A stretch of DNA of 64,000 bases from Oculina patagonica (Eukaryota): NCBI RefSeq assembly GCF_052425735.1, contig NC_135764.1, forward strand, positions 25,420,001 through 25,484,000, given 5' to 3'. The notes below the pieces were generated by a model that was not told the DNA's origin, did not search any database, and saw only the letters and a list, made by a program, of their open reading frames with translations. Made by a program: the position numbers and the translations under genes. Below, in pieces: positions 6,501 through 62,632 of this stretch; positions within the stretch are counted from its first letter, which is position 1, and the number at the start of each line of letters is the position of its first letter.

Positions 6501-9500
6501 TACATAAACTCTGTACCGTGTCTAGCTTGGAATGCCTGCCTGCGCCCTACATAAAGCTCAGTATGACTGTGCTATAAAAAAAAAATTGGTATGACTTTGG
6601 TGCGAACTGTTCTTCCAAGAATTGTAGGCCAAACGCCAAGGCAAGAAAAGTTTTGTCTTTTTAAGACTACATGATATTCTACTGAACAGAAAATTCAGTT
6701 TTTCGACACGGAATCTCATTATGATAAAAAAAAAATTATCCTCTTTCTTACAAAGTGTGCTTCACACATGCACAATAAAATAATATGTACCTGATATAAG
6801 GGAACAACTACTGCAAGAATTATTAAGTTACAAGGGCAGTATTTGCGGATGAGGTAAGCTAAGCAAACTTCGTACGATTGAAGGTACATACATGAAGTTT
6901 GAATTTCCTCAGGACTGCATGAAGATCGCTTGTTTGTTCTTTGTGGCTTTTCAACGTATTCTGTGTAATTCGTAATGAGACACAATCAGTAAACTTATGG
7001 TCTTTATAGATCATTTTGCTGAACATTGAAACAAGATTGTTAGTTATTGCATTATGCCACAATTTTAAATGTGCACGCAAATAAAAGGTCGCCGTTAGTC
7101 ATTTCAGTGCGACAGTGTGTTCAAACAAAAGCAACTGAGCGATAATTTCCCGTGGTACTGTTTATTTTGCTGTGCAAGATGATTCTAACTTTTATGACTG
7201 CAGAAAAATCCTAGTGTGTGACCATTCAAATGAAAGCTATCGAGCAGTACTTTCATGTAGTACTGCAGCTGTACTGTTGCAGGTGGTGGTTCTAACTTTT
7301 AAGTCTACGGATTTAAAACCCTAGTGTGTGACTACTCAAAAGAAAGCTATTGCGCAGTACCAAACACTAGTGTGTGACCATTCAAACGAAAGCTATTGAG
7401 CAGTACTTTCATGTGGTACTGTTTATTACGCTGTAGAAGGTGGTTTTAACTTTTAAGTCTGTGGATGAAACCCTAGTGTGTAACCATATAAATGAAAGCT
7501 ATTAAGCAGTACTTTCATCGGGTGATCTTCAGCGATCTTTGGGAGAGTATCTGAAATATTTGGTCATCTCTAGATGACGTTCGAAAATCTTCCAAAGTCC
7601 TCAAGTGATCTTCGGAAATTGTGGGAAATCTTGGAGCCACTCTAAAAACGGTCTTTAGCTCTATATTGGAGTCTCCGTTTTTTATTGGGTAATCTTTGGG
7701 ATAAGTTTAACCTCACCGAACAAAATTAACAAAAAAAACCCTAGTGTGTGACCATTCAAATGAAAGCTATCGAGCAGTACTTTCATGTAGTACTGCAGCT
7801 GTACTGTTGCAGGTGGTGGTTCTAACTTTTAAGTCTACGGATTTAAAACCCTAGTGTGTGACTACTCAAAAGAAAGCTATTTCGCAGTACCAAACCCTAG
7901 TGTGTGACCATTCAACTAAAGCTATTGAGCAGTACTTTCAACTGGTACTGTTTATTACGCTATAAAAGGTGGTTTTAACTTTTAAGTCTGTGTATGAAAC
8001 CCTAGTGTGTAACCATATAAATGAAAGCTATTAAGCAGTACTTTCATCGGGTGATCTTCAGCGATCTTTGGGAGAGTATCTGAAATATTTGGTCATCTCT
8101 AGATGACGTTCGAAAATCTTCCAAAGTCCTCAAGTGATCTTCGGAAATTGTGGGAAATCTTGGAGCCACTCTAAAAACGGTCTTTAGCTCTATATTGGAG
8201 TCTCCGTTTTTTATTGGGTAATCTTTGGGATAAGTTTAACCTCACCGAACAAAATTAACAAAAAAAAACCCTAGTGTGTGACCATTCAAATGAAAGCTAT
8301 CGAGCAGTACTTTCATGTAGTACTGCAGCTGTACTGTTGCAGGTGGTGGTTCTAACTTTTAAGTCTACGGATTTAAAACCCTAGTGTGTGACTACTCAAA
8401 AGAAAGCTATTTCGCAGTACCAAACCCTAGTGTGTGACCATTCAACTAAAGCTATTGAGCAGTACTTTCAACTGGTACTGTTTATTACGCTATAAAAGGT
8501 GGTTTTAACTTTTAAGTCTGTGTATGAAACCCTAGTGTGTAACCATATTAAATGAAAGCTATTAAGCAGTACTTTCATGTGGTGTTATTATTTTTTTTAC
8601 AGTTTTAGCAGCCCCATTTTATCACGTTATTCTTCGCCTTCAGAAAGAAAACCATTTTACAGTCATCAAACCGACAGAACACAATATAATACTGACCTTT
8701 GATGCTGTTTTATTAGCTGGGATAATCTGCGTGGGCACAATGGGCAGCACACAATTCCCAAGTTGTCGACACAAGGGGCAAGTGAATTCTCCTTTCCTTG
8801 GATTGTACGGATGCATCTGATGCGGAAGTTGATGAAGCAGGTTTGCATCTTCTTCCTGCAAGAGATTCGCAGTTATTGTCAAGGGAACGTAAGACCCCCA
8901 CTATCCACTACTGATCAGCGCGAAAAAAAATTACAGTTGAATCCCGATAACTCGAACCCTCAGTAACTCGAACTCCAGCTAACTCAAACCTTTTTCGATT
9001 CTCCTTCAGGTCCTTTTCTTACTAATTTTACCCTTGATAACTCCAACTCCCGATATCTCGAACCTTTTTCGACTTCCCTTGAAGGTTCGAGTTATCGGGA
9101 TTCGACTGTATTTTCTCAAACGCATTAAATTTTCGTATTTCTATTTGGGGTTGAACGCTCGTTCAACATATTTAGCTAGAGCTGGTTCCTAAGCCAAGTG
9201 ATACACCAAACACATCTGGATAACCGCGAGAGTTTTGAGTAAAATATAAATTCATTTTCACTAGGCGTTGCCCTTGGCGTCGCCGTCGTCATTGCCTAAG
9301 CTCTCCAATACTCCACTGTGCATTGTATTTTCAACTCTTTCCTCGGTGCCCGGAAATGTGGCGAAACACTCTCTCTCTGTTTGACATATTACTTAAGCAT
9401 GTTTTCCAACTGTTACAAGGTCGAAGCCTCTCAACAAACATGTCTTATTTTTACAGACTGCCAATAAATATAGCTTGTTTTTAACCACCTTTTTTATCAT

Positions 9501-12500
9501 CAAGCCAGTGTCAAAACCACTGTATGCATTATTTTTTAGGAAACAAGAAGTTGAAGAATACCTGAAGAGATTTGAGGTACGTTTGCTGACAGTCTACATG
9601 AAGGTGATGGCCGCAAGTTTGAACATGAACTCCACCTTCCGTGCCACTTGCAGATGCATCCAGACTTGGAATCTACGTGAATAAAAGTTAATAACATATA
9701 CCAACTATGAAACAGGGAATGTGATTGGTTGAAAAGCTCTGTTATTCAAGGTTGTGGTTTAGGTACAGTGGAAAACACCCCACCTGACTTAATGACGTGA
9801 AATTGTTTAGGAGACGAAAGAGTTGATTCCAGGAATCGATAAAGGGAGAACTTTTTATGTCCTTGCTACTCATATTACGAAATGACAATTTGAATAAGAC
9901 AAACTCACAGCAAATGTCAATTGCGACTTAAAGGGGCTATGTCACGCAATTTTAGGCAATTTCAGCACTGACCAACTGGTCATAGAATCAACTGAAATAT
10001 CACAATAACGGCTTAAAACTGTAGAAGAACTCAAAAGAAACACAGAAAGGCCAAAAAGCGGCATGGATGGGCAAAATTCGAGAAGGTTAAAACAGATTGC
10101 GTTCGGGTAAGGGACGGACCATTAGAAATAACCGGAGGGGGGTAAAAAATTTTCGGTGCAGGAATTTTTTTTTTGAAGGCCTACTTGTCTGCAGGAATTT
10201 TTTTTCTGGGGCACAAGCTTTGCACGAATTTTTTTTTTCGCCCAAAGCACAGGCGGCCCAAGCTCACGATGTGAAGAGTTGAAATAATACTCTTTTGAAA
10301 TAGGCGAAACGTGACTCTCGCCTGGTGGCATATGGAGGTGTTGTGTTACAACGATTCGTATTTATAAAGGTTTGTATGGGAGAAAACGCTTTCGAATTTA
10401 TAGCTAAATATAATGATATTTTGACAATAATATCAACTTCCCTCGATGTCTTGTTGTTATATCTGTTGTTATCTCGCTTCTCAGGCCGATCCGAAGCGTT
10501 TTAAGCGAGTTATGCCATTTCGGGTTTCCACTGCTAAGAAGAAGTACATGGTAGCATGTTTCGAAAACTGTGAAAAGAGTATTATTTCAACTCTTCACAT
10601 CGTGAGCTTGGGCCGCCTGTGCCCAAAGATACAGGTCTTTTTTTGTAACGCAACTATGATTTGCGTAACAATTATCATTATTAAATAGCATTATTGTTTC
10701 ATTTTTCAATTAAGCGACATTTAGGGACCGTTCATGTTTTATGGGGTAGGGGGGCTGAAGGGATTTGATAGATAGTGCCTGTTAAATATAATCCCCCCCT
10801 CCTTATTAGAAATTTTTACCCTGGTCCCTCAACAAAAAAGATGGAAAAGATGACAGCTAAAACTTATCAAGCTAAACTTTGGAATATCAGACAAAATTGC
10901 AGTTTAAAGTAATAATAATAATACTGTTTGTGCTTTTGATTAACTGTTTACTGATGCGACGCTATTGTTAGTGTGGGTCAGGTGTGTTTGCAACCAAATA
11001 GTTGATAGGATTCAGCTGATGCTGTTCTCTCGGTACATGACAAATTAGAGGGGTCCGGGGGCATGCTCCCCCGGGAAAATTTTAATTTTCAGAACCTCAG
11101 AAACACTATTTTAGCTATTCTGATGGACGTTTATAGATGCCATCATACAACACTTACAGGTAATTCCGTTGCACGAATTTTTTTTTTTCAGGCACAACCG
11201 CTTGCAGGATTTTTTTTTTCGACAAGTTTCCCTTGCAGGAATTTTTTTTTTGGTAAAAGTCACCCCCCCTCCGGTTATTTCTAATGGTCCGTCCCTAAAC
11301 TTGAAAAACGTTGTTTTCCCGCGCTTCGCACCGGTTGCATGTTTTCCCGCGCTTTTTACTGGTTGCATATTTTCCCGCGCATTGCACCGGTTGCACGTTT
11401 TCCCGCGCATAGAACGAGTTGCATATTTCTGCTTCTATTTCTGATTGATTGACGTTCGTAGTGATTGACCAGACATGATTAATTGATTTTTGGTTTAGAA
11501 AAACCAATCTAAGGGTGAATCGTACCAAGTCAAAGCGTCTCCTCAAGTCTTCAAATCTGTTCCTGAACGTTGTTTCACAGTTGATAACACGAGCCTCTTC
11601 TTCTTCACGGCTTAGCGGAAGCTGATTGTGTCTTACATGAAGTGCCCTGTGTTTCAGCACTGTTGTAAAAGAAGAAATAGGATAACACGGTTAAAATGGC
11701 TGGTTACTTCTGTGCTAATGCTGTGAGAATTGGATTGAATATAAAATAAGTTTTTCCTTGGCAATGAAATTTCTTATTCTCAGAAAATGTATGCCTGGTT
11801 TTAAGCAAATATCTTAAAGAGAAATCAGGCAATCACATGGGCCTAGTAAAATTAACCAAACTCATGTCTATTGAAATTTAAAGAAATCGAAGTAACAAGG
11901 GTAAATTGCAATTTAAAAAAAAACACAAAAATATATATAATCCTGAACTTTATGATGTAAAATTAGTGTGTTCAAGACATCGGGTGATCTTCAGCGATCT
12001 TCGGGAGAGTATCTGAAATATTTGGTTATCTCTAGATGACGTTCGAAAATTTTTCAAAGTCCTCAAGTGATCTTCGAAAATTGTCGGCAATCTTGGAGCC
12101 ACTCTAAAAACGGTCTTTAGCTCTATATTGGAGTCTCCGTTTTTTCTTGGGTAATCTTTGGGATTAGTTTGACCTCACCGAACAAAATTAACAAAGATAT
12201 GTCCTCTGTCTTAGCCAACTAGAATACATCTTTTATTCGGTTATAAAAACAATAAGCTACTTTACCTGCACTAGGTTGTAGCAGAGCTACGAGCCCAATT
12301 GGCCTTCCCTCTGTTGATGTCGACGTTTGTCCACAAATAACACAGTCAAACAATTCTTCAGTCGTTTCGCTTGTGCCGTCTATAGCCATATTCTCCAGGG
12401 CATCTGAGAAATCATTGGCAAGACACAGTGTTATTTCAAAGGGCATTTGGGTAATTCTGTTTATTTTCGTTAGTTATGAGCTCTAAGCTTCAAATCGGCA

Positions 12501-15500
12501 GCGCAACTTAGTCTTTTCTTGACAAAATCCTGGCCACGTTTCCAAACAAGGATGAATTTCGTACACTATGAACGACATTTTAATACAAACTGAGAAAAAC
12601 TTGAGTAGCAACTTTAGTACCTGGATCTTTCTTCAAGGTTTTCTCCATGAAACTCTTCTGCTTGGATGCAAATTCGGCTAAGAGTTTTTGCTGGCGTTCC
12701 CTGGCAAGCTGCCGTCTGCAAGTAAAACAAAACACCAAAATGACTCAATTAAAAAGCAAACCTATTAATGTACATCTTGTATATCCTTGAGTGACATTAA
12801 GAGGCCATTAACTGTTGGAAGAAATTTTGGTTTCAAAAACGGTTAGGCTAATATTAAGAAGGTATTTTGTATCTAAAACATATTAGATGCGAAAAGGCTT
12901 TCAACACACTGCAACGGGAGGAAGCCATTTTTTGGAGGTTTTTGCATCCATGTTTTGGGGAAAGGAGCTTATTGACGTAGAGGGGAGGTGTTTTGGATGT
13001 TTACGGCATCTAAATGACTGTCATAAATAAATCTGAAACCAAAGTAAGCTCTGCCTAATATTCTGAGAAAAAGAGCTACTAATACAGCTGTTACCTGCGC
13101 ATAGTCCTGGCCACAGAATCGTCATCACCATCTGGAGAGGAGGGACTGGTACTAGTCTGAGCAGGTGCTGGTTGGAGCTTGCGCATTGCTGTGGCATTCT
13201 CGGAACTGGATTTACTAATCACATCTAACAGGTCTGACAGGTACTGAACTTCATCACCATACGCTGGATTCCTATTGGAATCAAGTTGAAGGATTAAAAA
13301 AATAACTTTTTTCAACGAACTGATAAGTAAGCTACATTGTTAGAGTGGGGTGGAGTAAATTTAGACTTTGCATTGCGTCGTTTTGCGTGTACCAGGTGAA
13401 TGTCACGTTCAAGATACGAGGTAATAATGCGACAAGTTAGCTCATTTGGTTCACCGTTAAGTGCCTGCTTGGAACGTTGGAGGTCGCATGTTTAACTTTT
13501 GATCATGCTGGCCGTGTATTAAGTAAATGTAACTTGTTCTTGATTAGATTACTGCATCCTTCGACAGGAACGCTAAGCCCTTTGCTTTGTCGCCTATCAC
13601 CTTTATTATGGAATAAAAATTTGTAGAGACAACCTGTTCGAAAGGAGTAGGATAAGCGGTTTCATTCAGAATACCGATCGCATCCTGTGAATTGCCATGA
13701 TGCTAATAATGATGTGAAAATAATAAACCATTAAGAGAGAAGGGTTAAAGTTGCAATAATCTTTCTAACTCAATTGTAAATTTTAAATTTTTATATTTTT
13801 AATCTTAGTTAGACAATATTGTAATTCGTAGTTATTCTTAATTATAGCCTAATTTATTTTTATACACTTTCAAGAAGTTTGTATTTTTCTATTCTGTATT
13901 TTTATTTCGTGGTGCACCTGAAAACTAGCTTTTTAGCTAAGTGTTGCGGACCACGTTAAATAAAGATTGGATTGTATTGTATAGTATTGTTAAAATGTAC
14001 ATGTAGGTGGGGTGACCTCAACCTTGTATATCTTCTGTGCTGTTGCAAAACATCTTTTACCCACCTTCCAGGTGACGATGTAGTGGAACTGGTCATGACT
14101 GACATAAGCTTTACTAACAAGCTCAAAATACTCTGGTTGATTCCTTCTACAGGGCACGCACTTGAGCCTTCCGACTTGTCCGGGGATTCATGCGAGCCTC
14201 CAGATGACGTCATCGAACAAGAGCTTGTTTCCATGGCAACATCACCAACAGCCTGCTCCAAGTCAGGAATAGCCTCTTCTTTGTCTAAGTGCAGATTGAG
14301 GGCCATTTCTAGATTTCCTCTGCAAGCCCTCAAGAGGTTTATTGTAGCAGCTAATTAAAAAAATAGGCGTCATAAGACTGGTCTAAACATACCTTATTAC
14401 ATGAAATTTTCGCGACACGTTAATTTTGCGAGTTTCGCGATTCTAAAAAAATCGCAAAATTAAGGTGACGCGAACAAAAAGTGTCGCGAACATACCATGA
14501 CGCGAAAATGAAGTAACTCACATTTTGCCGATTATCAAGAAAGAATGAGTTAAGTACCACTGAAGGAAGCAATTTTCAGTGTATATTGATGTTGTGGTCA
14601 ATTGACTCAAGAACAATTATTCACGAACAAGCATGAACTGCTTGTGGACATTGTGAAAACTGCTCTGTTGTTACTGTTGACATTTAGTCCCACTGTTGCA
14701 TTTTTGTTAATTTTTACGTTAGTATTCCTTTGACAAAGTCGTTTTATTAAATTCAATGACATGTTTAAATATATTGCCAAGGAAATATAAATTGTGTCTT
14801 CCTCAAAAACGCGTAATTAAAGTGATTCAAAATACAACATTTTCGCAAAATCGCGAAATTTAAGTGTCGCGAAATATGCGCACCTCAAAATCGCGAAATT
14901 TACGTGTCGCCAAAAATTTCATGTAATAAGGTAATTTGCTTTTCACGTCCATAATATAATGTTAGCTTACAGGGTTGTTACTCATTTGAGCTTTTGAAAT
15001 TCCATGACTTCCCATGACCTTTTCCATGACTTTCAAAGTTTTCCATGACCTAAATTATCAAAAATTATCTTGATTTCGTATACGTTTTTATCCTTTTCTT
15101 CACCAAAAGTAATCGGCCTAATTTATTTTGTACAATCAATACCATTTTCCTTGACTTTCCATGACCCACGCTTACATTTCATAACTTTCCAGGCCTAGCC
15201 TGGAATTGAAATTCTCAAATGACATATTTGTACGAGTAATTGCCTTCGGAGTACTCGTGAGCGCTCGCGCTAGTTTTTGATTGGATGAAATAATTCGAAA
15301 AATTCTTCGAGTGCTTTAACGAAGATTTGCCGAAACCGGCACTTATTCCCCCGACTGATCAAAGGGAAATGGGTTATTCCGAGTTGGTGCTAACCATATC
15401 CAAGGAAAATCAAAGGAAAACACAGCAAAGTACCTCAATCAACAAATCATGCATGGACAACCACGAATTCACGAAGCCCGACTTTTTCAAGGATAAAGTG

Positions 15501-18500
15501 GTCTTGAATTGAGTTTTCCAATCACGCCCACGGTGAAACGTTCAGACAAATAAAAAGTACATCAGATTAATAATTGTATAATAATGTTTACCTTCTGATG
15601 CATTGGTTAAACTGATGAACTGCTGTACCAAGCCCCGAAATGACGCTGTGTCCTTAATACTCCAGCCTCTTCTATCGTTTGACCCAATTGACAGCAGCCC
15701 AAGAGAATCCTGAGCACCACTCTTGGTCTGCTGTGGTTCAGATGGGCTTGTACATGTGAACTCTATATCTGTTAATGAAAGGAAAGGCATTAATTTTTAT
15801 CTATTCATTAAATGCCATTCAAACTCTTTTGTAGCTCAAACCTGTACCTGCCCTCGGAACTCACTGCTAATATGAGCAGCTATCATCTTGTTTGATGTTT
15901 CTTCTGGCTGGAGTCGCTGTGTTAAATCCTTAGGCAAAATACTTCACTCTTACAGTGCCTCTCCCTACTCAGGAGAGAGATACTATAGTGCTGGTAAACG
16001 GTAAACAGCTAGCATCCATAATTCAAGACACTTCATGCTACAGGCCTACAGGAACCAAAGTTTAAAGCCATGAAATTGTGAACCATTAGGCACACTGTCA
16101 ATTAAATGACTAGGTCACGGATTTTAACAGATTTTGACAGTGTCGTAGGCAACTTAAAAAATGGTCCATTTTTATTAACAACTGCTTTTTTAAAGCACCA
16201 AACCTGTTTAAAAGCGCATTTGGCCGCAGATGGCTCGGATGGAAATGGATTGCAATTTTAAAAAAATTTTTTCAAAAAAATTGATATTTATAGCCGAAGT
16301 TTGGTTTCTTTCCCCAAATAAAAGTTATATCTTCAGTTAAATGTTCAAAGATAATGTTTTTCAAGGGTAAAGTTGCCTGCCACTTATTTCAGAACAGTTC
16401 AGACCAAAAATCTGCGAAATCCCCATGACAGTCCCTTTAAATTTAGCATAATTTGGACAGCCAAGTAACATACCACTTGCACTCTCATCACAGGTGTCCA
16501 TTGGTTCTTGCACAGCCCGTATCACATGGCTGATGTTTGTCACCATGCTGGAAGAACAGAATCCCAAGTCACTGATAGTCCTTGGCCAACCAGCAGGAAC
16601 TTGGTGAGTCTATAACACAAAGACATAAAACTCGTATCAATACAGTCGCCACTGAGATAGACTTCAAGCAGTCCCTAAACCTGATTTAAACGAGTCATCT
16701 TTGAACGGAAATTTCTTAAAATTAAGGAAGCTGTCTGAAGTAAAAACATGTCAGACTATTTGAGAAGATGAAGAAACAGTAACAATAGTAACGGTTACTT
16801 GATGGTCTATGAGGAAAATCATGAACATTTTATAGACTACCAGTAGATATCGTAAATTAAAGCTACCATACATTTCTAGTATCTCTTGTGAGAAGAATTG
16901 TTATAATCCCAGTAAATGTTAATAGCAATTTTCCATGACGAGAAATACGAGAAAAATAGAAAAAAAATCTCATAGAAATAATTAAAACAATGAACAATAG
17001 AACAAATAGAAAAATATTTTTTTCTTTCACTCCCTTTGCATGCCCCCACCCCTATCCCTCATGCTTCGCGCTCACGCTTTCTTCACTCGCTGTTTCTTTT
17101 GCGTTCTTTTGAGATGACAAACAGGGTCCATGAACCATAGTTATGATCCCGTAGCTCGTTTTACTTACCCTAAAGAGCCATTCATGATACTTGTTAAGAT
17201 ACATCAGCAACATGGAAAGTTCCAGTGGCTGCAAGTATAAATTTCATGAAGGTTAGAAAAGCAGCTAATTTAATTAACTCCTACATTAGAGATCGACATT
17301 AACTCTTATATAAGAAAACTAATATAAACTATGCAACTTTCTTTTTGCCACCTTGCCAAAGAGGAAGACGGACAGTGGCCATGAAACAATAAAACACCAA
17401 AAAGACTAAATTGTTTAGTTTAGTCAAGATGTCATTTCTTATGAAAAGCCATGTAAGCTCACCGAGGCTTGGATTTTGATCCCGTTTCTCCAACATGATA
17501 CAAAAAGACCTACCTGGTTTTCATCACTAGCAAGAGCCAGGTTTTTGGATGGAATCTTGAGCCTCTCGGAGACACTACAATATGCAACAATGTCATAAAT
17601 TGTGAATTTTTGCTCTCAGTTAAAGTAAAAGACAAAATTTCAAAAGAACTGATAAAGACCAGAAACATTCAAGCATCTCTAACAGTTTTAATTAGAAAAC
17701 CTCACATATTTATAAACTTAACTCTGCTTTTTAAACAAGAATTGTCGCAGTTTTAGGCACCGTTTTGAGCAGTTCAAGTGCCCTCCTTCAGGCTATGAGC
17801 AAAACAATCCAACTCTCATGTCTAGATATTTATTCTGACTTTGACTTTAAATTCCAACATAAACACTACCTGACAAGATGTCTGGTGAGTTTCGTGATAA
17901 GATCTCGTCTGTGAGTTGGTTGTTGTTCTATCAAAAACTGAATGTGTTGTAGCTGGGCTATTTTCTCTTGGGTGCTGCTTTGGTTCTCTGAAATTTGAAT
18001 GACAACAAACTTAACAGTGCTTCGAGACTGTGTATAGCTATTGCCAAACGTCCAAATATAGATGCATAGTTGCCACAGACATCAGTTTTCAAAATTCCCT
18101 GACTTTTCCCAGATAAAAATAAAGTTTTGCTGACCAAATAAATCGCGGCCTGCAGCCTCCACTTCCAAAAGTAAAAACATGACTGAGGTCACATTGACCT
18201 GAAATGTTTCTTCCAACCTTCAATGGTGTGAAATCAGATTCGTCATATTTTCAGTTTCCCCCGACTTTTCTTTAAAATAAAATCCCTGTCTTTTCCGTGA
18301 CCTTCAAAAAAATTATTTTTTCCCTGACCATTACCTGACCTGTAGCAACCACGTACTACTAGTATACAAACCTATTTTTGCACTGATTTTTTGTTGTTTT
18401 TGTGGGTGATAAGACCTAACTCTCAGGCTAACTTGATTTTTTGCCACCAACAATACTCCGGTTATAACTTTACCAAGGACTGATCACAAGATTCAGCGAG

Positions 18501-21500
18501 TGTGTACTTACGGAGAGCACTATTGAGCACGCCATTCATAAATGGGAGGAAGGGCTCAAACAGAGGAGGCTTCATGAGATGTGGATTGTACAAAGCATCT
18601 GCCATAGCGGCACACACATGATGAGGGGAGTCTGTACTGGGGTGCAGAGGAGCATAGGGGTCTGTGAAAAGACAAACAGTAGATCAGCATTAAGTCATGC
18701 TAAGTTCTAAAGAACAGTTAGACCATTCGCTTTCGATTTCTCTGATTAGAAATGGTAGTCAAAGAAATTTCAAGCTCATAACCTAATCGCTAAATACATT
18801 GAATGGCCGCAGCATAAAAACTGTTTTAAACTGTGAGTAATCTGTGCACATTTGGCACATTTTGAAATCAATCAGACAATAAAGCAAACTATTGCCAAAT
18901 ACAAACACTTTAAACTGGTGTTTCTCTCCTCTTTAAGGGAAATACGCAGACCAAAGTGAGTACAGGCATTCTTCTTAACCTTTGCAAATAATAGATCTAT
19001 CCCCAGAAACCTTTTTGCAGAGGAAAGTGGGTCATGTTCTCCAAGGCACGACGAGAAGGGGCATTGATTCACTTCACGAACCTGCAAGTCCATGGCACTA
19101 ATGAAGGGTAAGTCTGAGCAAACAGCGATTTCCTAAAATAGACATGAGCACTTTTTGTAGTAGTCGGAATCTGAATCTGAGTTTGATTCTGATAAGGTGA
19201 AGTAAACTAGTTATTCTATGCTTAATACACCCTACCTTGTTGCAATCTGTACGTCAGCTCTCTATTCAAACAGTGATGGGTGTTGATCTGGTGGAGATCT
19301 TTAACATCCTTACCTGTTAACAAACAGTTTGCATTTTACGTGTGATTACCACTTAACTTTACTACATTTCCAAATTCTTATCTACTCAATAGAACTCAAA
19401 ATCGACGATGTACTTAAAAGGAACTAGACTGTGCTATTTTAATAATTTATTTTTCTTGCCAATATTTTTACACAAACCATAAAATTCTAATGGTTAATAA
19501 AAGATGTATTCACCAATAAGATCAATATTGCATTATAAAGTGACGGATTTAAAAGCATTAAAGATGAATTCCAGTCCGTACTGCGCAATCTCGGCTGCAA
19601 TGTTTATGCGAGCCCACACGAAGGAATGTTTACAAGCAAAACTGAAAATTCCGCGACAAACTTACCTTTTTCTTCATAATAAACGCCAGATATCCTTGCA
19701 GAACAAATAATAACGAGTAGAGGAACCTTGACGCTATTTCAAACCGACGTTTCAGCTCATCGGAAATTCTTGAACGAAACGAACTGTAATGGCGGACTAA
19801 AATACTTCATGTATGCTGTCACCGAAGTGTAACGTTTCAACGAATTCAAAACAAAAACGAAAACAAACCCCGAGTCTGCGCAGCACGGATTGGAATTCAT
19901 CTTTAAAGATTGAAGCGCAGCCAGGATTAGAAATAATAAAAACAAACGTTCACTGGCTAAAAATATTAAAAACAAAGCATTAAAAGCATTACTTTAAAAT
20001 CACTTAAACCAAAGTTACTTTAACGTTTTGTTCAATGTTTCTTTTGGGCAACAGATATCATGTTTTGAGTTTTGCAAACAATCAAGTCCAGTATTTTTTT
20101 CCATTTTCCACAGTTTTTATTTTAATTGAAGACCAATTGTTACTGTGCCTTTGATTAACATGCGAACTCTGCTCAATCAACCGCTAACGTTTTTTGGCTG
20201 CCCTTGATCATCTAAGCAGACCTCTCAAGAACAGAAGTTTATTTCAACTGGTTCAAAAGGTCATGTCTGTCAGTTGTGATCACTTTGTTTGTTTGTGTTT
20301 TTCAAGGTTCGTTGGCTGTCGCCATTATTTTAATGATTGAGGGCAGCAAAAAATGCAATCGTTGGTTGGATTTTGAACTTCAAAGTTCTCATGTTATTCA
20401 AAGGCACAGTAAGTGTCAGAATAGCCTGAAAAAGCATTTGAACAAAAAACACTGAAAATCAAAGCCTGTCAGACAGTGTAAAACAATGTGACTCCCATAA
20501 GAGCAAAAGCAAAACAAACAAACAAACCGTAAGCGTCAAGAAAGTCAATACAGCGGTCCACTATTAAGCAGCCAATATCCCTTGACTCATCACTTGTGTT
20601 TGCACAAGGCAAGGAACGCTGACAGAAAAAAAAAACACATTTCCCCATTAATGTACATAGATTTTGCCTAACAGCAAACACTACTCACTGATTTCAACTT
20701 GTAGCATTATAAAGGGGAACTATAATTTTATAATAAGTTATTTATGCAGAGGGTTAATTTTTGTTAATTGTCAAGGGCAAAATTACTCAAAGATTCCTAA
20801 GATTGCCAGTGGACACCTGAAGATTCAAAAGTTAACGATCCTAAAAATTTAAAGTTTGTTGAAAGGTGCCAACATTACAATCTACCAGGTTGAGTTTTTT
20901 TAATGACAACAATGAATTATAGGATAGAAAGATTTGCTAGTTAGAGTATATACCAAAATACAAAATTTATACTTTGCAACACAAGTACAAGGCAACACTT
21001 ACAATATCTGGTGTTTTAGGATTTGCCATTACTGCCACCTTTGTAAGATAAACAGCAAGATGCACTACATCTGCTAAGGAGTTAATGTCCTCTATAGCCT
21101 GAAATTAAATTAAGAACATTCTTGTTAACAAGAAGAAGTTTCCAGACTTCATCCACAGAACAAATTAAAGGGCATACGAAAGGCATAAAGAGTTCTGTTG
21201 TTATGTTAAGTTAGGAAAGAAATGATCAGAAACCATGATGTGTTATCAAGGCTGCTGCCTAAGGAAATTTTTAAGGAGCCCTTTTGGCTCCTTACATCAA
21301 AATTTAGGAGCCCAAGCCATTATGTTAGGAGCCCGGCTTAAGTTGCCAAAAACAAATCGATGGGGGGGGGGGGGGGGGTTACTTAGGCAAATATGTGGTC
21401 AACTATGTGGCCTAGAGGAGGGGCCCAGGGATTGAACCTTCCCCCAACATTATTGCTATAATATACTTGAAGGTCCCCTAGGGGGTACTCCCTATAGTGG

Positions 21501-39500: not shown

Positions 39501-40394
39501 ACTTTAAGTGTATGATATGAGGAATCTTTGGTAACTTTATTTTTGCCTGTTTTGCTCGAATGTTGGGCGAAAACCATCTTAACACAAATGTCCTTAAACA
39601 CTTCAAAACACTGTCACACTGATGATATCATAATTTTTAAAATAAACCATTCTACATCTGTGCATGAAAACGCTTAAAATTTCTTAATAACGAAAATGTT
39701 TAAATTTGTTAGCGGGTGTGCTAGACCAGAAACAGACTTTTTACACAGATTAATTACAAGAATAATGTAAACACGCAAAACGATTAACCTTTTAAACTAA
39801 TTATCTTGTAAACAAACAGTATAGTAAGCAAAAAACACGTTACGATTTTTAGAATCGATCTAAGCTTGCAAAATTGAGTGAGATTTTATTGTAGCGTAAT
39901 TGTAACTAGTGATCTTAGTTTACTCCCTGAAAGCAAAAGACGTATCTAATTTGTACTGACCCTTCTGGTTTCATAACATCTTCATCGCCACAATCACAGG
40001 CGCCCCCTGCTTGACTTCTGAACATGTTAAAATCATGACCTTCGTGATTCCCAGCATGAAAGCAATCCGCGCATAACGACATACAAGGAGAGATGCCGCA
40101 GTCTCTACAACGATATGCCACAAAGTTCTTGTTCCACACCAGACCACAGATTGTTGGCGAGTCAAATGACCTCAGAACATTTTTAAATTCCTCCGGAGGC
40201 CTTCCACCAGCTATGAGCCATAAACACCAATCTTGTCTTTCGGCGTCAAATGGATGCTGCAGGCTAAGCACACCATCTAAAAAGCTTTGTATCTCCTTCT
40301 TTCCTTTCTCTGTGTGGCAGTGAGCCTTGAAATTCGCGGCGGTACTCTGCTTCGCTCTCACAGAGCAATTTTCAGGGAAATGTTTATCCGCCAT
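567..40394 (-). CDS. UBR3: E3 ubiquitin-protein ligase UBR3 (N-recognin), multi-exon, 3' end outside window
   Basis: Phase-consistent exons traced by hand: 39961-40394, 38841-38983, 37756-38126, 36538-36775, 34021-34197, 32700-32833, 32223-32303, 31627-31692, 31102-31191, 30480-30608, 29610-29662, 28992-29131, 28675-28760, 27331-27390, 26765-26831, 26509-26605, 25575-25719, 21003-21098, 20528-20618, 19236-19313, 18512-18661, 17870-17987, 17514-17574, 17169-17228, 16474-16609, 15592-15768, 14023-14350 (alternative same-phase donor at 14065), 13095-13271, 12621-12715, 12266-12403, 11526-11659, 9562-9672, 8697-8855, 6892-6960, 6181-6329, 5479-5549, 4729-4846, 3926-4023, 2933-2982, 2558-2638, 1977-2078, 567-692 (about 1828 codons). 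Motifs: UBR box, [35 protein letters not shown], split RING-H2 (CVIC / CGHHLHVDC / CPLC). Confidence 0.95.
855..1751. mobile_element. Tc1/mariner-pogo-type MITE
   Basis: TA|CAGTCAACTCTCTC...GAGAGAGTTGACTG|TA; subterminal GTCCGTCTTATAGAG repeats. Confidence 0.85.
3131..3522. mobile_element. Non-autonomous TIR element, Kolobok-like
   Basis: AGGGACTATGTCACGG...CCGTGACACGGTCCCT flanked by ATAA/TTAA. Relatives at 16106-16436 and a left part starting near 9952. Confidence 0.6.
5210..5384. mobile_element. 175-bp Tc1/pogo-type MITE
   Basis: TA|CAGTCAACTCTCG...CGAGAGTTGACTG|TA. Confidence 0.85.
7135..8582. repeat. Minisatellite (about 105-bp unit) with 530-bp higher-order repeat
   Basis: CTAGTGTGTGACCATTCAAATGAAAGCTAT recurs at 7211, 7741 and 8271. 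Confidence 0.92.
8697..12403 (-). CDS. UBR3: UBR3 exons 30-33 encoding the RING-H2 domain
   Basis: FDCVICGQ (12266-12403), [12 protein letters not shown] (9562-9672), [17 protein letters not shown] (8697-8855). Confidence 0.9.
8934..9108. mobile_element. 175-bp Tc1/pogo-type MITE
   Basis: TA|CAGTTGAATCCCGATAACTCGAACC...GGTTCGAGTTATCGGGATTCGACTG|TA. Confidence 0.85.
10111..11295. mobile_element. PIF/Harbinger-type non-autonomous element
   Basis: TAA|GGGACGGACCATTAGAAATAACCGGAGGGGGG ... matching inverted copy|TAA; 3-bp TAA TSD. Confidence 0.88.
14392..14931. mobile_element. TA-flanked MITE (Tc1/mariner-type)
   Basis: TA|CCTTATTACATGAAATTTT...AAAATTTCATGTAATAAGG|TA; TCGCGAAA subterminal repeats. 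Confidence 0.85.
21247..23266. mobile_element. Non-autonomous TIR element with 5-bp TSD (hAT5-like)
   Basis: GTTAT|CAAGGCTGCTGCCTAA...TTAGGCAGCAGCCTTG|GTTAT. Confidence 0.75.
23814..24543. mobile_element. Long-inverted-repeat (foldback-like) element
   Basis: 23814-23941 is an imperfect inverted copy of 24419-24543; no clear TSD. Confidence 0.65.
27391..28674 (-). other. U12-type AT-AC intron in UBR3
   Basis: Minus strand: donor ATATCCTTT at 28674, branch site GCCTTAAC, 3' end CCAC at 27391. Joins SQLVDL to IPDKPG in phase 0. Confidence 0.92.
27938..28472 (-). mobile_element. 5'-truncated CR1/L2-type LINE fragment
   Basis: QNRAARVLT...LGW..L...[14 protein letters not shown] (LINE ORF2 C-terminus), followed by AATAAA and an (ATCC)n tail on the minus strand. 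Confidence 0.8.
30117..30408 (-). mobile_element. tRNA-derived SINE
   Basis: Box A TGGTCTAATGG, box B GGTTCGAGCC, body TTCTTGGGCAAGACACTTTACTCTCATAGTGCCTCTCTCCACCCAGGTGTATAAATGGGT. Confidence 0.85.
30903..31040. repeat. (CAGA)n microsatellite
   Basis: Imperfect CAGA run. Confidence 0.9.
33356..33822. mobile_element. Tc1/pogo-type MITE with degenerate right end
   Basis: TA|CAGTCGAAGCTCTCGTAAGCGGACAC; CCGCTTACGAGA subterminal repeats. Confidence 0.65.
34878..36375. mobile_element. EnSpm/CMC-like non-autonomous element with CpG-dense subterminal repeats
   Basis: CA|CCCTTGTAAAAATTTTACCGCGATCGC...GCGATCGCGGTAAAATTTTTACAAGGG|CA; 2-bp TSD. Confidence 0.82.
36910..37187 (+). mobile_element. tRNA-derived SINE, internally deleted
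   Basis: Same body as 30117-30408. Confidence 0.75.
39961..40394 (-). CDS. UBR3: UBR3 exon 1 (UBR-box zinc finger)
   Basis: [56 protein letters not shown], continuing in exon 2 as GFCHRHG; GT donor at 39960. Confidence 0.95.
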
Positions 40395-46500: not shown

Positions 46501-49500
46501 GCGCCAGACTCCCGATCAAGCGGCCCAAGTTCTAGCCCCGGCTGGGGTCACTGTGTTGTGTTCTTGGGCAAAACACTTTACCCGCATATTGCCTCTCTCC
46601 ACCCAGGTGTATAAATGGGTGCCAGTGACGTAATGCTGGCGGGGGGTACCCTGCAACGAACTAGCATCCTATTCAGATGAAGTGGAATTATTCTCAGCTG
46701 CCTAATGCTACGGAAACCGGGATAAGCTCCGGCAGTGTGGGCTGCATGGCTTTTGGCTTCCCTTCCCTTCTTTTCTCTGTAGGGGTATCAAACATGTTTT
46801 TGGGAGCATGTGAGCACAGCATTTTTCTTTTTGGGCACGAGCATTGACACAAGTTAGCTTTGTGAGCAACAAGAACTTTTCCAAAAGCTACCTCCACTAA
46901 AAAACCAAGCATGTGAGCACTTGTAAAATATGCAACCACGAGCAAACAGCACCCACTAAAATTTTGTGAGCATTCTGAGCAAAAGCCTTATTTTGCAAGC
47001 ACTGCAAAACTTTGAGGGGCCATTCATGACCCCTTTCTGTCAGAGATTAAGCTCTAGTTTTATTTGCTTTGTGTATCTTGTTCACAAACTGTTTTAATTT
47101 TTTAGATTCCTCAATCAAATGATGGCAAAGATTGGTGGGAATACATTGATCCTAGTGTCAGCAAATCGATGTTAGATGGTATGCATTTTGCGTAATTGTT
47201 ATTTTTTATCAATTATTACTTTATTATTGATTTATTAAATGGCTGCTGAGATTAAACTATTCCGTGTCCTTTAACTGTTTCAGACATAGCACAAGATTTT
47301 CTTAAAGTCATGGAAAAGTGCCCTAACAGGTTGAAGAGAAAGATCAGTTCTGTCACCAACTTAAAGGCAAGATACATGTATACTAACTGTATAATTTAGC
47401 TTATTCAACCCTCCAAGTTAAGATCATTTTAGTTGCCATGACTAAAGTCGCCACCCTGGGGACTAAAATTGAGAAGAAGGATTGAGGTATGAGCTTAATT
47501 TAGCACCTGAAATTTTTTGCTGGTGACCAGACTTGAGCAGCTGGATGCCGAATGGCCACTAAGGAAAAAAATAAAAGAAGAAGAGGATGATGCAGTGATG
47601 TAGTTTTGCTGCGAGTGGAAGGGAGGGGGAGGGGGGGGGGTGGTGTGCTGTATTTGATGCATACCCCTCCATTTCTCCTTTTCCCCAGATCAGCCTTATT
47701 GGGGAAAGTGATGTTACAGTGAAACCCCGATTTGAAGAAGTGGCAAGAGACTGGGGTTTGTCATATTACAGTTCTGTTCCAAGACATTTTACTGTTTTGG
47801 CTGGGTGAAGAATGAGTTTTTTATACCAGGGACTTCTTTTAGAGGGGATCGTTTGATCAAGGTTCCATTGTATTTCTTAAGCTTATTAGCATGACCTAGT
47901 GACCTACCATCAGGCAAACTCTTCATCTGATTGGCTTTACAAGTGCTGTCTAATTTTGGATAGACTACCCAGAGTGTGCCCAAGTAAAATTACCAAAATC
48001 ACAAACCAAACCATAAATAAACCACTTTCACTGAATATTTTGTCGAATATATCGGTCTCTGGGTTATGCTAAAACAATCAGACGGCTCCCTCGGTTTTTA
48101 TTGGCTTTTGATAGTTTGCTTAGGGCTTGGCCCCTCGCCAACTACTCTATCAGCCGATAGAAACCTGGAGCATGTCATCTAAGTTATTGATGCAAGTTAC
48201 TTTGAAAAATATTTCTAGCTCCCATGAGTTTCCTTAAGCGTATGTGTAGTAGGGCTACGACATGTAGGTTTGTCTCCCGTTTGGATAACTCGGATATTTT
48301 TCCAAGTAGCTTACCTCACTAGCATTTTGTGCATGGATAAGACTTCCATTTGTCGCAAAAATCACAACAGTTTTGCAATGCCTTGGCTTTTGGTAATTTG
48401 CAGGGTGTATCACACAGCAAGGTATCAAAAGGAGAATCAAGTAAAACAAATGGTGGAGCTTCAGGTAGTAGCTTAAGTATATCAGCAATGGCTGCAGCTC
48501 ATAATAGCCTGGACAGCGCTCATAATGGGTATGCTTCTTACGATGGATCATACCTTCAAAATGACTTAGATGGGAAATTATTGCACAAGCAAAAATCTGA
48601 CAAAGAGAAGGAAAGGGATAAAGAGAAAAGAAAGGAATCATCGCTGGGGAAACTCAAACCCTTACCTGCGACTGCATCAAGCGGGGCAAGTTCGTCAGCT
48701 ACTGTTACAGCCATGCCTCCCTTGCCGCCCTTGCCCCCGTTGACCTCAAAATATGCTACTGTGACAACTACAGCTAGTCAATTAACGCCAGCTAGCGATG
48801 CAAAGATTTCTACATCTACGGCTCATTCTACTTCTGGGACATCATCAGCGAAAGATCCTTTGTCATCGCGCAAACATAGACATCACCATCAGGGGGATGG
48901 GCAGCCCGCAAAGAAGCACAAATCTTCGCACAATCACTCGCAACGCTCACACTCTTCCTCGCATCGCAAATCTAGCGCATCGTCTCAATCCTCCGATTCT
49001 TCCCCCTCTAAAAGTGCCAAACATTCTCATTCATCGTCTCAGCACAAAAGCTCCAGCCATGCTGTTAAGCCGTCACATCCTTCTCATCACTCTCAGCCAG
49101 GTCACTTGTCTTCTCAAGGTGCTCATAGCTCTTCTCATTCTGTGCATTCTCACTCTTCCAAGAAACCTCACCCTCCCTCCCACCACACGCCTTCAAGCCA
49201 CAAGCCGCCGTCACACCATGGACACAGCCATTCATCGTCCCATAAGTCTTCCTCAGGTACATCGCAATCTGTTAAAAAACATTCTTCAAGTTCAGTGAAA
49301 CCACCACCGATGCTTGCTCCTACTCAGCCAGTGGCTAAACCAATGACTCCCCCACCACCCCCTCCCCCTCCTCCAGCCATGGACTTTGGTTTACTTCCAG
49401 GTGCTCTTGGTGGTTTTCCAGGTGCAGAAATGCAACCCCCACCTCCTCCCGGTGGGCAATTTACAGCTCAATTTTTGCAACCACCTGCCTTTCCATCTGG

Positions 49501-49600
49501 TGTAATGCCGGGAATGATGCCTGGAATGGTCCCCCCTCCACCACCCCCAGAACCTGAACCATCATCGCCCCCACCACCACCCCCTCCGCCCTTACCATGA
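40518..49600 (+). CDS. CCNT: Cyclin T (P-TEFb regulatory subunit), 10 exons, about 661 aa
   Basis: Exons 40518-40678, 40790-40871, 41808-41936, 43410-43470, 43843-43905, 45607-45652, 46312-46402, 47106-47178, 47284-47366, 48404-49600. Cyclin-box motifs [68 protein letters not shown]; C-terminal His/Ser-rich and Pro-rich tail. Confidence 0.95.
40679..40789 (+). other. U12-type GT-AG intron 1 of cyclin T
   Basis: Donor GTATCCTTT at 40679, branch site TTCCTTAAC at 40769-40777, TAG at 40787-40789. Confidence 0.93.
41144..41660. mobile_element. PIF/Harbinger-type MITE
   Basis: TAA|GGGCCTGATTACATGAGCC...GGCTCATGTAGTCAGGACC|TAA. Confidence 0.82.
42297..43362. mobile_element. TTAA-flanked non-autonomous element (Kolobok-like)
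   Basis: TTAA|GGTATAGTATACCCCAA...TTGGGGTATACTGATACC|TTAA. Confidence 0.75.
43938..44436. mobile_element. MITE with 7-bp TSD (P-element-like)
   Basis: GCGTAAT|CAGAAACCCATAAGGGTTGAAACGTGTAAC...GTTACACGTTTCAACCCTTATGGGCTTCTG|GCGTAAT. Confidence 0.85.
46474..46770 (+). mobile_element. tRNA-derived SINE
   Basis: Box A TGGCCTAATGG; same body as 30117-30408. Confidence 0.82.
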
Positions 49601-54289: not shown

Positions 54290-55951
54290 ATGGTTGTTCA
54301 AAAGCAAACTATGCCTTCTTTTGCCTCCATAATTTCTGTTTTGTCCATTGTGTTCTACTGCGCCGGCTTTTTAAGAGTTGAGCTTGAGTTACACGAGCAC
54401 AAGAAAAGAATAAACGCTCTTGAAAGCGTTGCAGAGGCCAAGCCGCCGTCAAACGATCCTGACATAATCAAGAATGCTCCTGGTAAGTTTGTCTTACATT
54501 ACAAGCTAGAGTTTACAAATTGTTACAATAATACAATACAATCAGCAGGAAAAAAAAGCTTGGTCGAAGCGAAAACACCGAAAAGGAAAATACCGTGGAA
54601 AAAGCTACGAGTTGAAACAAATAGCAAATCAACATGTTTTCGCTTGTTTCGTTTTTTTTATGGAGCCTCAAAGAAAACCGAAGGTTGGCGGGTCAAGTTT
54701 TCTTCAATCCAATGCAGACAATTTCAAACGTAAATAGTGATTCGACAGAATTTTCCTTCAGCTATGACTAACATAATGATATGAAATATATAAGATCGTT
54801 CTTTTGTTCAGTTTAATCAAACAAACAATCGGTTGTGACACTTTTTACATCAGAAAACTTGCAAAGGATATATCATATATTGCCAAGTGAGACGTCTAAT
54901 TGCTATTTTAAGTCTGTAATGTGAGAGATTTTAGATAACAAAATGTCAATTATTTCCGTCTTAGCCATCTTGTGAATTAAAGCCATCTTGTGAATTGCCT
55001 GGAGCAAGGATTCCTGCAAAGATGCTAGAACGAGCATAAGCGCACACCAGAGATTTTTAAATTTAAAAAAACTTGTTTGATTTAAAAGACACCAATGTGT
55101 AAAAGAAATAACTTGTGCATTTGTAATTAGAATTTTTCTTTTTCTTCGTAGAATTTCAAACCCATAAACATAGACACAGTCGTCATGTCGAGTCAACCAA
55201 GAACGAGTCAGAATCTAAAAGCACAGCGGAAACGACGATCATAATCAAACATATTTTAACAGACGGGAGATTGCATCTCTGTCAGTCAAAGGATGTCACG
55301 TGTTCATCAGGTCCCCCAGGCCCTCCTGGTCCGCCAGGATCGAGAGGAAATAGAGGAGTCCGGGAACGAAGGGGACAGCAAGGAAGAACTGGAAACAAGG
55401 GAGATAAAGGCATTATGGGATCGCCAGGAAAAAATGGCAAGCAAGGACCGGGAGGCATGGCAGGAACTAAAGGAGACAAAGGATCCACGGGCATGCCGGG
55501 AACGAAAGGAGACACAGGACTCGCAGGCATGCCGGGATCGAAAGGAGGCAATGGAGCTGCAGGCATTCCGGGATCGAAAGGACAAAAAGGAGCCGCAGGC
55601 ATGCCGGGATCGAAAGGAGGCAATGGAGCTGCAGGCATGCCGGGATCGAAAGGACAAAAAGGAGCCGCAGGCATGCCGGGATTGAAAGGAGTCAAAGGAG
55701 CCGCAGGCATGCCGGGATCGAAAGGAGGCAATGGAGCTGCAGGCATGCCGGGATCGAAAGGACAAAAAGGAGCCGCAGGCATGCCGGGATTGAAAGGAGT
55801 CAAAGGAGCCGCAGGCATGCCGGGATCGAAAGGACAAAAAGGAGCCGCAGGCATGCCGGGAACGAAAGGAGAGCCTGGTGAATCGTCGATATTAGCTTTT
55901 GGAAGAGGTACAGTTAAATTATTAATCATAATTATAATAGAAAGCAAATAA
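54290..55951 (+). CDS. Type II transmembrane short-chain collagen-like protein (exons 54290-54482 and 55152 to about 55951; 3' end uncertain)
   Basis: Hydrophobic anchor FASIISVLSIVFYCAGFL followed by a coiled-coil-like segment. Phase-1 G|GTAAG donor and TTCGTAG acceptor join in frame to an RHSR furin-like site, a Cys pair and a long Gly-X-Y run. Confidence 0.75.
55454..55885 (+). repeat. 36-bp coding tandem repeat, 12 units (GMPGSKGxxGAA)
   Basis: Unit GGCATGCCGGGATCGAAAGGACAAAAAGGAGCCGCA with GGN/GQK/GVK variants; 108-bp higher-order duplication. Confidence 0.95.
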
Positions 55952-59365: not shown

Positions 59366-59887
59366 ATCCCCAATATGGACGATTTCGCGAGGAGAATTCA
59401 GAAGCTAGAACAATCGCAGCAAGCGACTGTTGATGGTATCATCGAAAAGATTATGCAGTTGGTGAAGTCAAAGGCTGCACCATTTAATAAGGACCAGGTG
59501 TTCGAGCAGATTTTAAACCTGAAGGTTGTGGCTTTGGAAACCAAACACCCTAAAGCCAGTTACTACTCTACAGTGTTCCAAGCTTTACGTGAGAAGATGG
59601 GTGGTTCAGATGAGCAATTTAAAAGATATGTCTTGGCTCTTCTTGGTGACAAAGACCAAGAGAAGGTGCTTGATGTTATGACAAAGGTCGACAAAGCCCT
59701 GAGGGTCCCATCCTTTTCGGCTCCCACGTTCCGAGGTCGTGATCGTGGTAGATCTCTAGGCGGTGTTCAGTGCTTCTATTGTAAGGGTTATGGTCATTAC
59801 CAGAGAAATTGTCAAATGCGCTGGAGAGATGATGGAAAGCCACCACCAGCAAAGAGAGGGAGATGGTTCAGGGGGTCGCCAGTGTGA
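59366..59887 (+). CDS. Gag-like protein with CCHC zinc knuckle
   Basis: CFYCKGYGHYQRNC knuckle. ORF opens at acceptor TTTAG|ATC (59365/59366) and has an internal ATG at 59375. Confidence 0.85.
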   Translation: MPNMDDFARRIQKLEQSQQATVDGIIEKIMQLVKSKAAPFNKDQVFEQILNLKVVALETKHPKASYYSTVFQALREKMGGSDEQFKRYVLALLGDKDQEKVLDVMTKVDKALRVPSFSAPTFRGRDRGRSLGGVQCFYCKGYGHYQRNCQMRWRDDGKPPPAKRGRWFRGSPV

Positions 59888-60285
59888 TCGGACGGATTAA
59901 ATCTGTGGTTTTGAGTTCAGTTGAACCATTTGCGTGTAATAAGAATAAGAATAAATGAATTACAAACAGTATAAGATTGATTCGTGTGTACAAAGTTGAT
60001 TTCCTTTGTTACTGTTTTCTTTCGGTATTTTTAGGGCATTTCTTAGTCTTTTATTTCATGGCATATGGGTTCCACAACAAAATTTTAGTTTTATCTTCGA
60101 TGAGGGTGAGTAACTCCCATGGGCTAGCCTTATTGCTGGGCAGTCTGTGGACGTTCCTTTCGGGGCGTGGGAAGTTACTCTCTCCTGATCGGGGACCTCA
60201 TCTTTAGTGGTTAGATTTTCTTGGGAGGGATAATTTCGTTTGGGTTTTCAGTTTCCCATAAGTATTTTTCCCAATTATTTCGCAG

Positions 60286-62556: not shown

Positions 62557-62632
62557 CCAACTAAAGTATGGTTCAAATCAACGAAGTTGTCCATATAGTC
62601 TTGAACATTGTTCGTTTTCTTTTTGACTTCAG

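Follow-up and report, generated by a model that had tools for sequence, protein, structure and literature searches.

UBR-box ubiquitin ligases and RhoGAP domains are each well studied. Canonical RhoGAP domains (PF00620; those of ARAP3, p190RhoGAP/ARHGAP35, GRAF and p50RhoGAP/ARHGAP1 among them) occur in signalling adaptors and combine an all-helical fold with a catalytic arginine, the arginine finger, in the GxxR loop that follows helix A, and with a conserved helix-B lysine in support of the finger loop and of the contact to the GTPase. The BH domain of p85alpha and the RhoGAP-like domains of OCRL/INPP5B retain this fold without a working finger, and those of p85 and OCRL serve contacts other than GTPase-activating protein (GAP) activity, as binding rather than catalytic modules. 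We know of no ubiquitin ligase that contains a domain of the RhoGAP fold. UBR3, a UBR-box ligase, reportedly does not bind classical N-degrons (Tasaki et al. 2007), so that 'N-degron ligase' is a loose label for it. Here we describe a 64,000-nucleotide (nt) stretch of the genome of the coral Oculina patagonica (NC_135764.1, positions 25,420,001 to 25,484,000; hereafter the window, to which all coordinates refer), the minus strand of which carries most of a large multi-exon UBR3 gene. Six exons of this gene, at 20618-17169, form a cassette that, in our reading, encodes a RhoGAP-superfamily domain that has lost its arginine finger; for this combination of identity, architecture and finger loss we estimate a probability of about 0.85.

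A six-exon cassette with RhoGAP features

The six cassette exons are joined through GT..AG introns in RNA-derived contigs of five sequencing runs (X1, X2, X7, X12 and X13), as determined by comparison against window positions 16300-21300. On the minus strand the exon order is 21100-21003, 20618-20527, 19312-19236, 18661-18512, 17987-17870, 17574-17514, 17228-17169 and 16609-16476, with RNA joints at 21003|20618, 20527|19312, 19236|18661, 18512|17987, 17870|17574, 17514|17228 and 17169|16609, all of which read CT..AC on the plus strand and hence GT..AG on the strand of the gene. All eight exons are covered by single contigs, 980-1965 nt in length. The cassette exons, here named A to F, measure 92, 77, 150, 118, 61 and 60 nt, in total 558 nt or 186 codons, and the cassette starts and ends in phase 0, as do its flanking introns. 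Once spliced, the 186 amino acids (aa) are 100% identical to residues 870-1055 of the 2036-aa O. patagonica protein XP_078377169.1 (P0319). A joint skipping the cassette (21003|16609) is absent from the RNA contigs of the five runs, with the reservation that assembled contigs can hide rare forms; the cassette exons are constitutively spliced into the UBR3 messenger. The initial annotation, made from the genomic letters, had proposed that exons at 17169-20618 splice in frame; the RNA joints agree, all six exons are included and its coordinates turn out to be the exact boundaries of the cassette. All the peptide stretches that it quoted are present, except that exons B and C are longer than its ellipses implied.

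The order of structural elements along the cassette follows that of a RhoGAP domain. Upstream, the exon at 21003..21100 (-) encodes a conserved scaffold helix that aligns to the corresponding helix of all UBR3s (fish SEHVLCMVLYLIELGL, amphioxus PIIYLCIYLLDMAV) and ends in phase 0, as fixed by the joint 21003|20618. Exon A (20527..20618, -; residues 870-900) provides a linker and RhoGAP helix A, as judged by the RNA joints, the translation, the start of the Pfam match at residue 887 and a predicted helix at model positions 18-38. An assignment of the exon A helix as the conserved UBR3 scaffold helix was considered and rejected, since comparison between corals and the RNA joints place the latter in 21100-21003. 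Exon B (19236..19312, -) holds the finger loop (KDVKDLHQ) and helix A1, delimited by RNA joints and assigned by HMMER alignment to p190RhoGAP, and exon C (18512..18661, -) the helix B region, supported by joints, translation, alignment and orthologous exons in nine coral loci. Exon D (17870..17987, -), placed likewise by joints, translation and alignment and 87-100% identical at the amino-acid level in other corals, contributes the RhoGAP 'eerl..l..ll..LP..nr..L..L..HL..V' helices, exon E (17514..17574, -) the 'NkM..NLA' motif region, with RNA joints on both sides and a Pfam match reaching residue 1028, and exon F (17169..17228, -) the last helix of the domain (model helices 176-192), ending in phase 0 between the joints 17514|17228 and 17169|16609. 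Downstream, the exon at 16476..16609 (-), identified through RNA pieces, its joint and alignment, returns to ordinary UBR3 sequence and encodes the next conserved motif of the family, WF..N.L.N..H, equivalent to vertebrate SWFPGTNLLSNLHHVINFV. Searches with single exons return only unspliced genomic reading frames of other corals; the nine coral loci (from ENA, Tara Pacific and JGI coral metagenomes, with the JGI contigs contributing five unspliced loci) hold all or part of the cassette exons at 62-100% amino-acid identity. We also observed that three intronic stretches, 19473-19973, 17970-18136 and 16300-16466, display a summed word depth of hundreds to about 20,000 in the RNA-run contigs, compared to about 10-60 for UBR3 exons, and many loose ends; these are probably copies of abundant transcribed repeats outside the UBR3 messenger.

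Profile searches of the spliced product recover the RhoGAP family. PF00620 matches P0319 at residues 887-1028, covering profile positions 2-136 of 148; the excised segment scores 31.4 bits (E 2e-7) and the full-length protein 27.2 bits, relative to a gathering score of 24.5, and the Pocillopora cassette reaches 31.9 bits, likewise above the gathering score. The same family is listed among the precomputed families of the searched database for the Oculina (P0319) and Pocillopora (P0322) proteins. Using a seven-row profile of cnidarian cassettes against the sequences of the Protein Data Bank (PDB), all 12 chains retrieved at E ≤ 1 are RhoGAPs, comprising p190RhoGAP, GRAF, myosin IXb, RalBP1, ARHGAP12, ARHGAP15, ARHGAP5, ARAP3 and Rgd1, and an eight-row profile that adds Hydra and Clytia detects p190RhoGAP at 7e-8 and RalBP1 at 3e-6. 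In the cassette, helix A, finger loop, helix B, the 'LP..nr..L..HL..V' helix and the NLA motif follow one another in the same sequence and at the same distances as in canonical RhoGAPs; the consensus order that had been read by eye from the spliced peptide is hence borne out, as is the expected PF00620 match. A phmmer search of the spliced 186 aa against 150 UBR3 representatives gave no match, which shows that the segment is not ordinary UBR3, whereas an alignment to ordinary UBR3 was one of the outcomes that would have undone the initial annotation; the same search also missed the very divergent Hydra version. A protein-atlas feature search with residues 870-1055 returned UBR-type clusters only, at scores of 0.73 or below, and was uninformative.

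The predicted fold points in the same direction. An AlphaFold2 model of the cassette, computed from a seven-row alignment holding no canonical RhoGAP sequence and without templates, has a mean predicted local distance difference test score (pLDDT) of 80.3 and a predicted template modelling score (pTM) of 0.78. The top 50 Foldseek matches of the model in the PDB are all RhoGAPs, at template modelling (TM) scores of 0.5-0.65, and the top 30 in each of two AlphaFold DB libraries comprise nothing but RhoGAP proteins and entries without a name, so that the structural comparison suggested at the outset found RhoGAP structures only. In VIA-align, 42 RhoGAP/BH entries score at Z 10.5-16.2, headed by ARAP3 (Z 16.2 over 163 residues at 3.3 Å), before Z drops to 4.9 at the nearest unrelated fold. 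Canonical RhoGAPs share the all-helical fold of the model at Z 13-16 over 155-170 residues at about 3 Å, whereas p85alpha BH and OCRL/INPP5B, which reside in host proteins different from UBR3, match at Z 10.5-11.2 only. As these finger-less domains match worse than active GAPs, the cassette represents a separate loss of the finger rather than a member of those subfamilies. Within the limits of a predicted structure, we consider the stony-coral cassette as an established member of the RhoGAP superfamily.

In contrast to the fold, the residues required for catalysis are replaced. The HMMER alignment to p190RhoGAP places GIYR over DLHQ, so that the arginine-finger position is occupied by Gln908, encoded by the CAG codon at 19288..19290 (-), as had been noticed from the genomic sequence. 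Among five anthozoans, the finger column contains Q in Oculina, Pocillopora and Montipora, E in Acropora and I in Xenia. The lysine of p190RhoGAP AMKSFF in helix B aligns to the alanine of AAMADAL (codon 18602-18600), a call that derives from a single HMMER alignment beside a seven-residue gap and is therefore uncertain in register. This gap corresponds to seven residues, NPHLMKP, inserted right before LFEPF, which aligns to LPDPL, a 'PePL'-like motif. Canonical RhoGAPs thus present a catalytic arginine and a helix-B lysine where the cassette has glutamine and alanine as well as an insertion, and the cassette displays neither hallmark of an active RhoGAP, the finger in the GxxR loop nor the helix-B lysine. 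With the fold retained and the active-GAP residues absent, the cassette classifies as a pseudo-GAP, in agreement with that half of the earlier suggestion of a pseudo-GAP or GTPase-binding module. We note that a hydrozoan transcript product from Logan (P0317) has the finger loop SEGLRES at residues ~925-935, with an arginine one column off the finger position, resembling the RhoGAP EGIxR motif minus one residue; some medusozoans may consequently retain a finger-like arginine.

Host gene, insertion site and distribution

The identity of the host gene follows from its first coding exon, at 39960..40394 (-), which contains the UBR box (Pfam zf-UBR, 69.7 bits), and from its best full-length relatives, which are named UBR3. 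A search of 1.8 billion representatives with the UBR-box exon returned full-length proteins of approximately 1800-1950 aa, with source names of UBR3 from fish, beetle, spider, amphioxus, limpet, Hydra and sea star; no full-length coral protein was among the UBR3 representatives that it returned, and a fish UBR3 as query yielded fish sequences only. In tblastn, the conserved blocks to which UBR3 relatives align extend over the window from 40.4 kb to 0.5 kb, with no match between 26.5 kb and 12.7 kb, the region that contains the cassette. The window encodes residues 1 to ~1816 of the 2036 of the UBR3 protein, which fits the initial estimate of about 1828 codons with an incomplete C-terminal domain. 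In P0319, Pfam recognises a UBR box (zf-UBR, 67.7 bits), a winged helix of the UBR1-like kind (UBR1-like_wing, 55.3 bits) and, as C-terminal domain, PRT6_C (235.6 bits); these three, together with nearest relatives named UBR3, identify the host protein as UBR3. Downstream of the cassette, a basic helix and the start of the RING are encoded at 12252..12732 (-), as supported by tblastn to UBR3 orthologues and by conservation between corals. The bilaterian proteins (vertebrate UBR3 and Drosophila Ubr3) are orthologues, and their basic helix and RING exons match the coral at 55-79% identity. An intron between RING exons (window ~7100-8600, -) holds a tandem repeat with a unit spacing of about 530 nt and an open frame in each copy, and the same repeat is present in the corresponding intron of a related coral (L001, 19500-20100).

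The site of insertion is a short surface loop in the helical scaffold of UBR3, with the winged-helix region on one side and the part comprising the UBA-like domain, the basic helix and the RING on the other. Cnidarian references were collected with Hydra UBR3 residues 1-790 as query, for which coral exons outrank other phyla, and the retrieved UBR3s include those of Oculina (P0319), Pocillopora verrucosa (P0322), Acropora millepora (P0320), Montipora foliosa (P0321), Xenia (P0328), Clytia (P0318) and a hydrozoan (P0317). In a full-length alignment of 15 UBR3 sequences, an insert of 160-188 aa is present in 8/8 cnidarians, while in the bilaterians no more than a short acidic loop separates the scaffold helix from the WF..N.L.N..H motif. 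Measured between two anchor profiles, the distance is 171-202 aa in 14/14 cnidarian sequences (stony corals, the soft coral Xenia, Hydra and Clytia) compared to 0-66 aa, with a median of 12, in 164 non-cnidarian UBR3s, vertebrates included, in a survey that leaves out sponges, placozoans, ctenophores and sea anemones; bilaterian UBR3s accordingly span 0-66 aa between the anchors. Every cnidarian UBR3 examined hence carries an insert of equal size at the same site, and none of the bilaterian ones examined does. As all 14 cnidarians carry it, the insert is not peculiar to Oculina and is instead common to Anthozoa, i.e. both coral clades and an octocoral, and to Hydrozoa. The view that vertebrate UBR3 has no such domain therefore stands.

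A second difference concerns the region downstream of the cassette. A UBA-like domain (Pfam UBA_4, 34.1 bits, E 2e-8) is found at P0319 residues 1147-1185 (window 14058-15784, -), and PF14555 is listed for cnidarian UBR3s only (stony corals, Xenia and one hydrozoan transcript product), with no bilaterian, Hydra or Clytia entry. Bilaterian UBR3 entries thus have no UBA-like Pfam match, in contrast to most cnidarian entries, and cnidarian UBR3 seems to have gained two modules, the cassette and the UBA-like domain.

Sequence divergence was compared between Oculina and three other corals. The ratio of nonsynonymous to synonymous substitution rates (dN/dS) of the cassette is 0.06-0.13, lower than the 0.15-0.33 of the neighbouring UBR3 exons, and the cassette is under strong purifying selection. 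The bounding introns are of the same phase (0-0), the length of 558 nt is a multiple of three and relatives have a plain loop at the site, which together form the signature expected of exon shuffling. The source would be a RhoGAP gene, from which the exons may have been shuffled into a phase-0 intron of UBR3 in or before the cnidarian ancestor.

Elsewhere in the window, a long open frame with a collagen-like Gly-X-Y repeat (GxxGxxG.., with repeated GMPGSKG units) at 55127-55948 (+) is apparently a separate plus-strand gene upstream of UBR3. The GC-richest part of the window contains an open frame of 419 aa (48341-49597, +) in which Ser, His and Pro are abundant and poly-Pro tracts occur, and long retroelement-like frames, one of 764 aa resembling reverse transcriptase/RNase H and one of 448 aa, occupy 59366-63970 (+).

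Weighing the assignment and its alternatives

Several observations weigh against a RhoGAP-derived, GTPase-binding domain throughout Cnidaria. The PF00620 scores of Montipora (24.2) and Acropora (24.4) fall just under the gathering score, Xenia alone and Hydra alone give no RhoGAP profile match, neither Xenia alone nor a hydrozoan-only profile retrieves a RhoGAP chain from the PDB, and the Clytia cassette obtains a RhoGAP match of 14.4 bits, below the gathering score. Pfam searches of each exon alone (E ≤ 10) also lack a RhoGAP match, a negative that carries no weight against the whole domain, since pieces of 20-49 aa are too short. In favour of the assignment in the soft coral and the hydrozoans are the position and the size of their inserts. 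In the 15-sequence set, hydrozoan and anthozoan cassette profiles recognise each other weakly (E 4e-4 to 8e-3), and the RhoGAP match of the cassette profile gains about 10 bits once Hydra and Clytia are added. A model of the Hydra cassette (pLDDT 80) has RhoGAP chains as its best, weak matches (TM 0.40-0.49, E 0.2-1), and its alignment included coral rows, i.e. it is not independent. The RhoGAP identity is thus strong in stony corals and less certain in the soft coral and the hydrozoans. Moreover, the structure of the cassette is a prediction from an alignment of seven sequences, GTPase binding and the absence of GAP activity are both deduced from sequence, and the seven-residue insertion falls in the helix-B region, the GTPase contact site of true GAPs, where it could abolish GTPase binding.

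Three of the alternatives that we considered are improbable. A chance resemblance of an unrelated helical insert would be compatible with the middling structural scores that helical domains often yield, and with the single-exon, hydrozoan-only and Xenia-only searches that lack RhoGAP; however, each of three independent lines of testing points to RhoGAP and to nothing else: the Pfam score exceeds its curated threshold in two species, the PDB profile matches are solely RhoGAP down to 7e-8, and the structural comparison reaches Z 16 with 163 residues aligned, well apart from the 4.9 of the best unrelated fold, so that this explanation is nearly refuted already and we rate it as the least probable of all. 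It is similarly very unlikely that the six exons are an alternative cassette, with the main UBR3 isoform devoid of it. Skipping 558 nt with phase 0-0 boundaries would preserve the reading frame and produce an 'ordinary' UBR3, and a minor skipped form could exist, as rare variants are dropped from assembled contigs, yet the five runs contain every inclusion joint and not the skip joint, and at 2033-2055 aa each of the three NCBI protein models for this gene is too long to be missing 186 aa. A working GAP that relies on another residue, or on an arginine supplied from elsewhere, is equally hard to credit: the overall fold and the NLA motif are retained in Oculina and Pocillopora and the hydrozoan P0317 has an arginine one position from the finger column (EGLRE), but the column itself is Q, E or I in anthozoans, the helix-B lysine is an alanine, and the finger loops of the eight sequences compared have no basic residue in common.

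The alternative of real weight differs from our preferred explanation in the partner only. The cassette may be a RhoGAP-derived domain that no longer touches GTPases and instead provides a rigid helical module for another partner, be it a peptide motif, a substrate or a different region of UBR3 itself, or shapes the scaffold, and we place this close to even odds. It is favoured by the loss of both the finger arginine and the helix-B lysine, by the seven residues inserted in the helix-B region, by the location of the most invariant cassette stretch within this remodelled region, and by the presence of the pseudo-GAPs p85 BH and OCRL among the fold matches; strong purifying selection argues against a mere spacer. 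Binding of something else by the remodelled helix-B face, for which our estimate is again just short of even, is at least as likely as binding of a Rho-family GTPase.

Proposed function and significance

Based on the retained fold and the replaced catalytic residues, we propose that the cassette domain no longer stimulates GTP hydrolysis and would instead serve as a 'pseudo-GAP', a module that binds without catalysis and thereby delivers a partner to the UBR3 ligase. A GTP-bound Rho-family GTPase is our preferred candidate for this partner, although tentatively, as we judge it somewhat less probable than not. Such a GTPase would either be ubiquitylated by UBR3, or itself draw the ligase to membranes or the cell cortex and regulate it there. 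In a bolder version, which we consider less likely than not, active Rho-family GTPases would have cnidarian UBR3 as a direct effector or as the enzyme that ubiquitylates them, and the domain would dock GTP-bound Rho/Rac/Cdc42 beside the UBA-like domain and the RING. As for its history, a finger-less RhoGAP domain may have been captured by exon shuffling before the anthozoan-hydrozoan split, which we estimate at hundreds of millions of years ago, and retained in all cnidarians sampled.

Already known are the RefSeq 'ubr3-like' protein and the automatic Pfam match in the searched database. A full-text literature search found no paper linking UBR3 with RhoGAP, and none among its top results on UBR3 in cnidarians. 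New, as far as we found, is the undescribed combination and lineage distribution of a known ligase family and a known fold, with the domain embedded inside a ubiquitin ligase scaffold in contrast to the signalling adaptors that carry canonical RhoGAPs.

In conclusion, the cassette offers a clean example of domain gain through a phase 0-0 multi-exon unit, and cnidarian 'ubr3-like' proteins should not be annotated as architecturally equivalent to bilaterian UBR3, from which, counting the UBA-like domain, they differ by two extra modules. As the insert is old, present in all cnidarians sampled, found in no bilaterian sampled and more constrained than the surrounding exons, it marks a lineage-specific function of a conserved ligase. 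If the proposed GTPase partnership is true, this function would amount to a phylum-specific wiring of cytoskeletal GTPase signalling to a UBR-box ligase, with no bilaterian counterpart.

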